Sequence record: OR228459.1 | Length of the DNA stretch: 64,000 nucleotides | Reading direction: 5' to 3' (one strand) | The notes under the pieces: model-generated | What the model was told of the DNA's origin: nothing | Seen by the model: only the letters and a program-made list of their open reading frames with translations | Database searches by the model: none | In this document: one piece after another, positions 49,625 through 49,715 of the stretch | How positions within the stretch are numbered: the stretch's first letter is position 1 | How the letters are laid out: every line of letters starts with the position of its first letter | Position numbers and translations under genes: made by a program

Positions 49625-49715
49625 GGAAGGTTGGCAGAGCTGGTTGAACGCAACGGTCTACTAAACCGTCATACGCGAAAGCGTATCGTGGGTTCGAATC
49701 CCACACCTTCCACCA
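49625..49715 (+). tRNA. tRNA-Ser with ACU anticodon (long variable arm)
   Basis: GGAAGGT/ACCTTCC acceptor, ACGGT-CTACTAA-ACCGT anticodon arm, ATACGC-GAAA-GCGTAT variable arm, GTGGG-TTCGAAT-CCCAC T-arm, encoded CCA. Confidence 0.9.

Follow-up and report, generated by a model that had tools for sequence, protein, structure and literature searches.

Why would a phage encode a tRNA whose anticodon has been described as absent from nature? The question is raised by a gene in Klebsiella phage fENko-Kae01 (OR228459.1), a 360-kb jumbo phage whose genome has a GC (guanine plus cytosine) content of 35.6% (PMC11218385). The 64,000-nucleotide stretch that we analyzed (the window) matches this genome with 100% identity over 49000-50500, and ARAGORN calls in it a tRNA-Ser(act) on the + strand at 49625-49715, which is a serine tRNA with the anticodon ACU and with adenine as its first anticodon base (A34). 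According to a 2021 review, A34 in the Ser/Arg box is "universally missing," and the tRNA sets of phages have the same prohibited gaps (PMC8007984); the anticodon of Ser(ACU) contradicts this rule. The answer that we favor, with a probability of about 0.65, is that the gene provides an early-expressed seryl-tRNA whose A34 remains unedited and which decodes AGU only, as extra, matched capacity for the commonest serine codon of the phage.

The gene encodes a genuine class II tRNA of the serine type. Infernal scores 49625-49715 at 52.3 bits (E = 5e-9) with the Rfam model RF00005, whose gathering score is 29, and the sequence has the cloverleaf, U33, a purine at position 37, and the long, stem-forming variable arm that mark class II members of that family. 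The body is serine-like: G2:C71, A3:U70, and C11:G24 are accompanied by a G15/C48 pair, and the D loop is of the Ser type. In E. coli, the identity elements for seryl-tRNA synthetase (SerRS) are G2:C71, A3:U70, C11:G24, and G73, the last being the discriminator base of E. coli serine tRNAs. The first three of these are present in Ser(ACU), and position 73 is A instead of G. An earlier, sequence-only reading of the window had described a class II serine tRNA with A34, a 5-bp anticodon stem, a CT-ACT-AA loop, and A73, and had proposed running ARAGORN on it; each of these features is where that reading had placed it (Table 1), and the ARAGORN call agrees.

Sequencing error does not explain the unusual anticodon. 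Four Salmonella phages (7t3, SE_PL, Munch, and PHA46) carry the 91-nt gene with 100% identity, and the copy in Erwinia phage Hallingskeid has 97.8% identity, with just two differences, both in the D loop. In Hallingskeid the flanks have diverged, yet the tRNA and the adjoining upstream −10 region are kept. The sequence-only reading had suggested comparing the anticodon in relatives, and it is ACT in all five, so that the same anticodon is found in six independently sequenced phages. Because the gene is identical or nearly so in the five others, including one with diverged flanks, an error can be ruled out. The retention of the tRNA in Hallingskeid despite its diverged flanks is also an argument that purifying selection acts on the gene as a whole, including its anticodon. 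On these comparisons, A34 is encoded and retained by selection, as would be expected of a natural decoder with an unmodified A34. (The annotations of the relatives are uneven: in 7t3, a "hypothetical protein," 7t3_0562, overlies the tRNA gene [L002:1132-1242], and in the PHA46 record [L004] the tRNA is left unannotated.) A BLAST search of E. coli genomes for the class of the tRNA body or for prophage copies gave no informative match.

Is Ser(ACU) confined to this lineage? We searched IMG/VR for CTACTAA loops that have GGTTCGAATCC after them at the distance expected for class II tRNAs; the resulting totals are lower bounds. At least 120 loci matched the pattern, and ARAGORN verified a tRNA-Ser(act) in at least 109 of them, mostly within phage tRNA arrays. 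Among cultured phages, Ser(ACU) is found in Xanthomonas phage XaC1 and in Escherichia phages EJP2 and 121Q, and the GenBank record for 121Q (KM507819) has named a "tRNA-Ser(act)" since 2014. These occurrences rule out a one-off peculiarity of fENko-Kae01. The recurrence of Ser(ACU) in phages appears to be newly described, although the gene itself was already annotated in public records: we found no publication on phage Ser(ACU) in the literature that we searched, which covered few subscription journals.

The ACU tRNAs are diverse. Across 31 that we aligned, the sequences of the acceptor stem, D arm, anticodon stem, and variable arm differ widely, and the cloverleaf pairing is nevertheless maintained in 98.8% of cells (as compared to 65% in shuffles). 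Compensatory changes are seen in 18 of the 20 pairs, and the loop stays fixed while all 5 pairs of the anticodon stem covary. The D arms are of two types, TGGC.GAG and TACCCAAG, which we take to be the proteobacterial and Gram-positive serine types, respectively. As both types occur among the ACU tRNAs, the alignment suggests that Ser(ACU) stems from several host backgrounds. A related case is the serine tRNA gene that lies ahead of Met-Asn...Thr in Asteriusvirus genomes, which is ACU in 121Q (L610:3465-3556) and GCU in PBECO4 (L600:1516-1605). Because the two tRNA bodies are unrelated, the sequences indicate that this difference is a gene replacement rather than a point switch. EJP2 has both an ACU gene and a GCU gene, 1.3 kb apart (L599:1514-1603 and 2863-2952), and we sought a near-identical copy of its ACU gene in the other records of the phage collection but found none.

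Recurrent does not mean common. In 100 neutral loci baited by Thr(UGU) or Ser(UGA), we found 14 Ser(GCU) genes and no Ser(ACU), and the raw ARAGORN output deposited by Morgado and Vicente (2019) contains 291 gct calls and 11 act calls, so that ACU accounts for about 4% of the serine tRNAs that read AGY (Y being a pyrimidine). By these counts, Ser(ACU) is not a type that is common in phages. The counts also bear on how the two anticodons are related: just 4 Ser(GCU) genes were present in the 120 ACU-baited loci listed, versus 14 in the 100 neutral loci (chi-square of about 8, computed by hand), and there was no Ser(ACU) in the GCU-baited loci. (Strict-pattern counts in the neutral loci are too sparse for a ratio.) In these patterns, ACU and GCU behave as alternatives, with ACU usually replacing Ser(GCU) in phage tRNA sets. 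The loci with ACU are AT-rich, with a median GC content of 0.38 and values below 0.45 in 94 of 99 among the IMG/VR matches listed, while loci baited by the GCT pattern reach 0.70.

Ser(ACU) also stands out, because the analogous strict split-box pattern for Asp(AUC) has just 8 matches in all of IMG/VR. A general habit of using A34 across two-codon boxes is weakly supported by these searches. As a side observation, ARAGORN called Asp(AUC) three times and Tyr(AUA), Cys(ACA), and Phe(AAA) in the ACU-baited IMG/VR loci (L007-L126) and none of these in the GCU-baited loci. Other A34 calls were a Phe(AAA) in Aeromonas phage Aswh_1 (L601:2647-2724) and a Gly(ACC) (L401:8607-8679).

In bacterial and archaeal genomes, 26 of the 120 pattern matches were real Ser(ACU) genes; by our own arithmetic, about 300 chance matches would be expected in the 596 Gb. 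With so few genuine matches, we rejected a bacterial origin or a wide bacterial use of Ser(ACU). Some of the genes in cellular genomes sit in phage-like tRNA arrays. In bacteria of the candidate phyla radiation (Vogelbacteria and Yanofskybacteria) and in others, an intact ACU gene lies beside a dissimilar Ser(GCU) gene, whereas the ACU gene stands alone in Polynucleobacter isolates and in Fusobacterium necrophorum ATCC 25286. On a Chloroflexota chromosome, the ACU gene arose as a duplicate of the GCU gene next to it and is decaying, with stem mismatches (L293:2353-2447 and 3225-3319). (The cellular loci are L293, L303, L321, L254, L297, L323, L250, L252, and L262.)

The other odd feature of the tRNA, its discriminator base, is a separate matter. 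The sequence-only reading had pointed to A73 as unusual for a serine tRNA, and A73 is indeed seen at 49712, but it is restricted to the lineage of Kae01, Munch, and Hallingskeid. Because G73 is found in the ACU tRNAs of XaC1, EJP2, and 121Q and in most of those from IMG/VR, A73 is, by this comparison, no part of the ACU phenomenon. Also, the Ser(UGA) of fENko-Kae01 (L006:14815-14906, outside the window), which has the same T arm as Ser(ACU), has U73, so the usual G73 is missing from both serine tRNAs of this phage. The Ser(UGA) of Aswh_1 has U73 too.

What could an ACU tRNA offer the phage? In the open reading frames (ORFs) of the window that are at least 100 amino acids long, which are a crude gene set, AGT is the top serine codon, with 387 occurrences (20.2 per 1000); the sequence-only reading had called AGT codons abundant in this phage. 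The other counts are 112 for AGC, 308 for TCA, 292 for TCT, and 116 for AGA, so AGU is used 3.5 times as often as AGC. Hosts among the enterobacteria favor AGC, and their one tRNA-Ser(GCU) covers AGU through wobble pairing. The tRNA set that ARAGORN finds in the window and the adjacent 20 kb comprises Ser(ACU), Thr(UGU), Met(CAU), Ser(UGA), Tyr(GUA), Pro(UGG), Lys(UUU), Glu(UUC), and Gly(UCC) and lacks Ser(GCU). Except for Met(CAU) and Tyr(GUA), these tRNAs fit codons that end in A or U. The genome paper counts 8 tRNAs, as compared to our 9, and gives them by amino acid only (PMC11218385). One of the nine, tRNA-Gly(UCC) (L006:19530-19605, or about 291529-291604 of OR228459.1, outside the window), is called by ARAGORN only and is absent from the GenBank annotation.

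Whether Ser(ACU) could meet this demand depends on what the anticodon reads and whether A34 is edited, and experiments in E. coli are informative on both counts. An orthogonal tRNA with the anticodon ACU, and with an anticodon loop identical to that of tRNA-Arg2, reassigned 9.4% of AGU in vivo; reading of AGC and AGA was below detection, reading of AGG was 0.36%, and cDNA (complementary DNA) sequencing detected no inosine (PMC11066159). In E. coli lysate, AGU was read better by the ACU anticodon than by a GCU variant (PMC6158751). Also, gammaproteobacterial TadA, the enzyme that deaminates A34, requires Y-U-A-C-G-A-A in the stem-loop, and mutation of any position of this motif abolishes or nearly abolishes editing (PMC12255301). 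The phage loop, C-U-A-C-U-A-A, matches at 6 of the 7 positions and has U at position 36, so it lacks the motif. The sequence-only reading had favored an unedited A34 but had warned that inosine (I34) could misread arginine AGA codons. The first part agrees with the E. coli surrogate, which is unedited and specific for AGU; misreading of AGA seems unlikely because the same anticodon and loop stay unedited in E. coli and read AGU only.

We propose that the host's sigma-70 RNA polymerase transcribes Ser(ACU) early, from a strong promoter that resembles the consensus and whose end is 4 nt upstream. Ser(ACU) would lie at the 5′ end of a transcript that runs into the next gene, ENKO_384, and would be excised by host RNases, with its CCA already encoded. 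Host SerRS would charge it by recognizing the long variable arm, G2:C71, A3:U70, and C11:G24. (SerRS does not read the anticodon, and therefore serine tRNAs can change their anticodon freely.) Host TadA would leave A34 undeaminated because the loop has U36 where G36 is required. A34 would then form a Watson-Crick pair with the third base of AGU, and AGC and arginine AGA would remain unread. The host, which is GC-richer, would have only tRNA-Ser(GCU) for these codons; because AGU is the commonest serine codon of the phage and the host reads it by G.U wobble, the phage tRNA would add matched capacity. We infer the expression, serylation, and modification state of Ser(ACU), and its benefit to the phage. 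With more doubt than confidence, we also raise the broader idea that AT-rich phages have repeatedly come to decode with unmodified A34 in the Ser/Arg box, as a strategy favored by selection.

Several observations weigh against an unedited, AGU-only tRNA that is kept for its codon match. Codon usage alone does not settle the choice of anticodon: about half of the viral loci with Ser(GCU) are equally AT-rich, and because equally AT-rich phages mostly keep GCU, the codon match is not the whole story. Similarly, one genus includes phages with ACU (121Q), with GCU (PBECO4), and with both (EJP2), and among cultured viruses ACU makes up only about 4% of the serine tRNAs that read AGY (11 vs. 291). 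The gain at AGU may be small because the host's tRNA-Ser(GCU) already reads this codon, and our codon counts are from crude ORFs rather than from curated genes. Two features are not canonical for a serine tRNA, namely A73 and the D-stem mismatch A12.C23, and they may make charging less efficient. The evidence on decoding and on the lack of editing applies by analogy, as it was obtained with a tRNA body from Methanocaldococcus jannaschii, which is different from the phage body. Finally, overexpressed TadA edits some sites that are one base off the motif (PMC12255301), so there may be partial I34.

A different explanation is that the tRNA evades a host defense. A change from G34 to A34 would hide the phage's AGY-reading tRNA from an anticodon nuclease, or another tRNA-targeting defense, that attacks the host's tRNA-Ser(GCU), and the change in decoding would be secondary. 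An arms race would fit the polymorphism between ACU and GCU within one genus (121Q, PBECO4, and EJP2), and the phage set also includes tRNA-Lys(UUU) and tRNA-Tyr(GUA), which are nuclease targets in enterobacteria. Changes in the anticodon loop that are predicted to confer nuclease resistance have been documented in phage tRNAs (PMC10264068). Nuclease-evading tRNAs are expected to preserve their decoding, however, whereas in Ser(ACU) the anticodon itself is altered at position 34 and the reading of AGC is expected to be lost, a cost that could have been avoided by a change at position 32, 37, or 38. Also, the defense explanation does not predict that ACU is tied to AT-rich genomes, and the same paper regards Ser(gct) as the untargeted serine tRNA in mycobacteria (PMC10264068). 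We found no nuclease against tRNA-Ser(GCU) in the literature searched (host genomes were not searched for defense systems), and no feature of the locus suggests one. The earlier suggestion of resistance to anticodon nucleases thus gains no support here, and we consider it unlikely. It is also quite unlikely that the anticodon reflects tolerated drift, in which AT-biased mutation turned a redundant Ser(GCU) into ACU, the host covers both codons, and the gene has little or no function. The Chloroflexota ACU gene, a near-identical paralog of the adjacent GCU gene that has acquired stem mismatches, is a precedent for drift; ACU occurs only in AT-rich genomes; and the phage tRNA does have the A12.C23 mismatch and a non-canonical A73. 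On the other hand, the entire gene has been conserved together with its promoter despite divergence of the flanks, and the stems of 31 diverse ACU tRNAs have been kept via compensatory changes. Furthermore, ACU and GCU substitute for each other, with a co-occurrence that is not random, and the Ser(ACU) pattern is at least 15 times as frequent as the Asp(AUC) pattern, which uniform mutational drift does not explain.

The remaining alternatives accept that the tRNA is functional but give it another product or another amino acid. If TadA or a phage enzyme converted A34 to I34, then the anticodon ICU would read AGU, AGC, and also AGA. The loop's match to the TadA target at 6 of 7 positions and the editing of some off-motif sites by overexpressed TadA (PMC12255301) leave some room for this, but it seems very unlikely, as no inosine was detected for ACU in an identical loop in E. 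coli, where AGC and AGA went unread (PMC11066159), and as single-position mutations of the motif abolish or nearly abolish editing (PMC12255301). Moreover, inserting serine for arginine would be costly (AGA accounts for 116 codons in the window's ORFs and for 14.8 per 1000 in ACU-bearing phages), and the phage genome paper mentions no deaminase. We give hardly any credence to mischarging, in which A73 together with the long variable arm would attract leucyl-tRNA synthetase or another synthetase and place a non-serine residue at AGU. A73 is the discriminator base of E. coli leucine and tyrosine tRNAs, which is the reason to consider it. By the usual identity rules, however, the body is serine-like (G2:C71, A3:U70, C11:G24, G15/C48, and the Ser-type D loop), relatives that share its 5′ half carry G73, the phage's Ser(UGA) likewise lacks G73, and recoding the top serine codon would harm every phage protein.

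How does an unedited, AGU-only Ser(ACU) compare with known tRNAs? The tRNA-Ser(GCU) of bacteria and of most tRNA-bearing phages likewise has a class II serine body, and its loop is the same except at position 34. It has G34 and G73 and reads both AGU and AGC, whereas the window's tRNA has A34 and A73 and is expected to read AGU only. In one group of Ser(GCU) genes, which are like those of RaK2 and PBECO4 and are found in about 30 jumbo phages, the variable and T arms are 97.3% identical to those of the window's tRNA. The ACU genes of 121Q, EJP2, and XaC1, which are jumbo phages of enterobacteria or Xanthomonas, have the same anticodon and loop and resemble the window's tRNA in the D arm and the 5′ strand of the acceptor stem, with the 5′ part being shared by the 121Q and EJP2 genes, but they differ in their anticodon stems and variable arms and in having G73. 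The standard A34 tRNA of bacteria is tRNA-Arg(ACG), the substrate of TadA, whose C-U-A-C-N-A-A loop shares 6 of its 7 bases with the window's tRNA. It has G36, however, while the window's tRNA has U36, is expected to keep its A, and serves a split box in which I34 would misread AGA. A genuine wobble A is found in two working tRNAs, the tRNA-Thr(AGU) of Mycoplasma and the tRNA-Arg(ACG) of yeast mitochondria (PMC11066159). These serve four-codon boxes in reduced genomes, where loose reading is harmless, in contrast to the window's tRNA, which serves the Ser/Arg split box alongside a full set of host tRNAs. The engineered orthogonal ACU tRNAs (PMC11066159; PMC6158751), from which the rule of AGU-only reading without inosine is taken, have the same anticodon and loop context and operate in E. 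coli-type translation, but they are artificial, with archaeal bodies and other amino acids. Lastly, the phage tRNAs that are predicted to evade nucleases also have an anticodon loop unlike that of the host isoacceptor, but their changes flank the anticodon and keep the decoding, unlike the altered anticodon here (PMC10264068).

Unmodified anticodons that begin with adenine are almost never used, and Ser(ACU), with its more than 100 relatives, would be a natural exception that is kept by selection. If it is charged, unedited, and specific for AGU, then bacteria can make good use of a forbidden anticodon, and the question about A34 avoidance would no longer be whether such tRNAs are able to work but whether they pay off for cells. 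Under the broader and more doubtful idea of a selected strategy, Ser(ACU) would also be the first natural system for studying why cells avoid A34 tRNAs. Serine tRNAs that read only AGU would then favor the AGU-rich mRNAs of the phage over the AGC-rich mRNAs of the host, and phage translation could continue if infection depletes the host's tRNA-Ser(GCU) or exposes it to attack. Genetic-code engineers would gain a natural AGU-specific decoder. For annotators, the message is that a Ser(ACT) call in a phage reflects a true gene rather than an error.

Early expression is suggested by the promoter. Upstream of the tRNA, a promoter scan found GGGACA (49588-49593) and TATAAT with a 17-nt spacing and a TG upstream of the latter, which amounts to 10 of 12 matches to the consensus. 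The 15-mer TGTGATATAATATAA, which includes the −10 hexamer and stops 4 nt short of the tRNA, has four exact copies in the window, always on the + strand (17105-17119, 49606-49620, 51934-51948, and 58412-58426), with near copies on the + strand at 26831, 14234, and 45895. An alignment of these seven sites has CTTGGGACAAA-N10-ATGTGATATAAT in common. The sequence-only reading's claim that the tRNA has its own phage-class promoter fits with this recurrence and with the conservation of the extended −10 element in Hallingskeid, where the sequence farther upstream has diverged. A sigma-70-like promoter upstream of Ser(ACU) is thereby confirmed as a motif, and its activity is predicted. As the −10 hexamer ends at 49616, transcription probably starts about 0-3 nt from the mature 5′ end of the tRNA. 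More broadly, the class CTTGGGACAAA-N10-ATGTGATATAATATAA has at least 7 copies in the window, two of them ahead of tRNA genes, and it probably marks the host-polymerase (early) transcription units of fENko-Kae01.

Table 1. Features of the Ser(ACU) locus of fENko-Kae01, in window coordinates
Feature	Position	Strand	Details and basis
−35-like element CTTGGGACAAA	49585..49595	+	Invariant in 6 of 7 aligned promoter copies; one change in the seventh
Extended −10 element TGTGATATAATATAA	49606..49620	+	TG at 49608-49609, TATAAT at 49611-49616
tRNA-Ser(ACU), class II, encoded CCA	49625..49715	+	ARAGORN, Rfam, conservation in five other phages
Acceptor stem, 7 bp	49625-49631 / 49705-49711	+	G1:C72, G2:C71, A3:U70 (sequence)
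D stem	49634-49636 / 49649-49651	+	G10:C25, C11:G24, A12.C23 mismatch (sequence)
Anticodon stem ACGGT/ACCGT	49653-49657 / 49665-49669	+	Perfect 5 bp
Anticodon loop CTACTAA (CUACUAA)	49658-49664	+	ACT (ACU) at 49660-49662; A34 is 49660
Variable arm, 18 nt	49670-49687	+	6-bp stem and GAAA loop, in minimum-free-energy and centroid folds
T arm, standard	49688-49704	+	GTTCGAATC-type loop, as in the class II serine type of RF00005
Discriminator A73	49712	+	Sequence
Encoded CCA	49713-49715	+	Sequence
ENKO_384, 423 amino acids	49734..51005	+	Annotation; ATG at 49734; ribosome-binding site GAGG at 49725-49728
Second promoter copy and tRNA-Thr(UGU)	51934..52068; tRNA 51993-52068	+	ARAGORN, motif; promoter 45 nt upstream

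Downstream, we found no terminator-like site in the interval between the tRNA and ENKO_384, so the two are probably co-transcribed, with the tRNA being cut from the 5′ end of the mRNA. The homolog of ENKO_384 likewise follows the tRNA in Hallingskeid. ENKO_384 has no Pfam match and belongs to PHROG 5960, which is itself without an assigned function; across the neighbors ENKO_383 to ENKO_386, too, Pfam gave no match and the PHROGs are functionally unassigned. Annotations elsewhere in the tRNA-bearing region include a peptidyl-tRNA hydrolase (ENKO_393, 55070-55459) and an ADP-ribosylglycohydrolase (ENKO_376, 46517-47482), and at other places in the genome, according to the fENko-Kae01 paper, there are a ribosome-associated inhibitor and an RNA ligase. 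Opposite two of the tRNAs, at 49661-49712 (−) and 51993-52066 (−), there are sub-threshold Rfam matches to the plastid untranslated-region families "psbl-rps4" and "ycf2," which are most likely artifacts of tRNA-derived sequence within those models.

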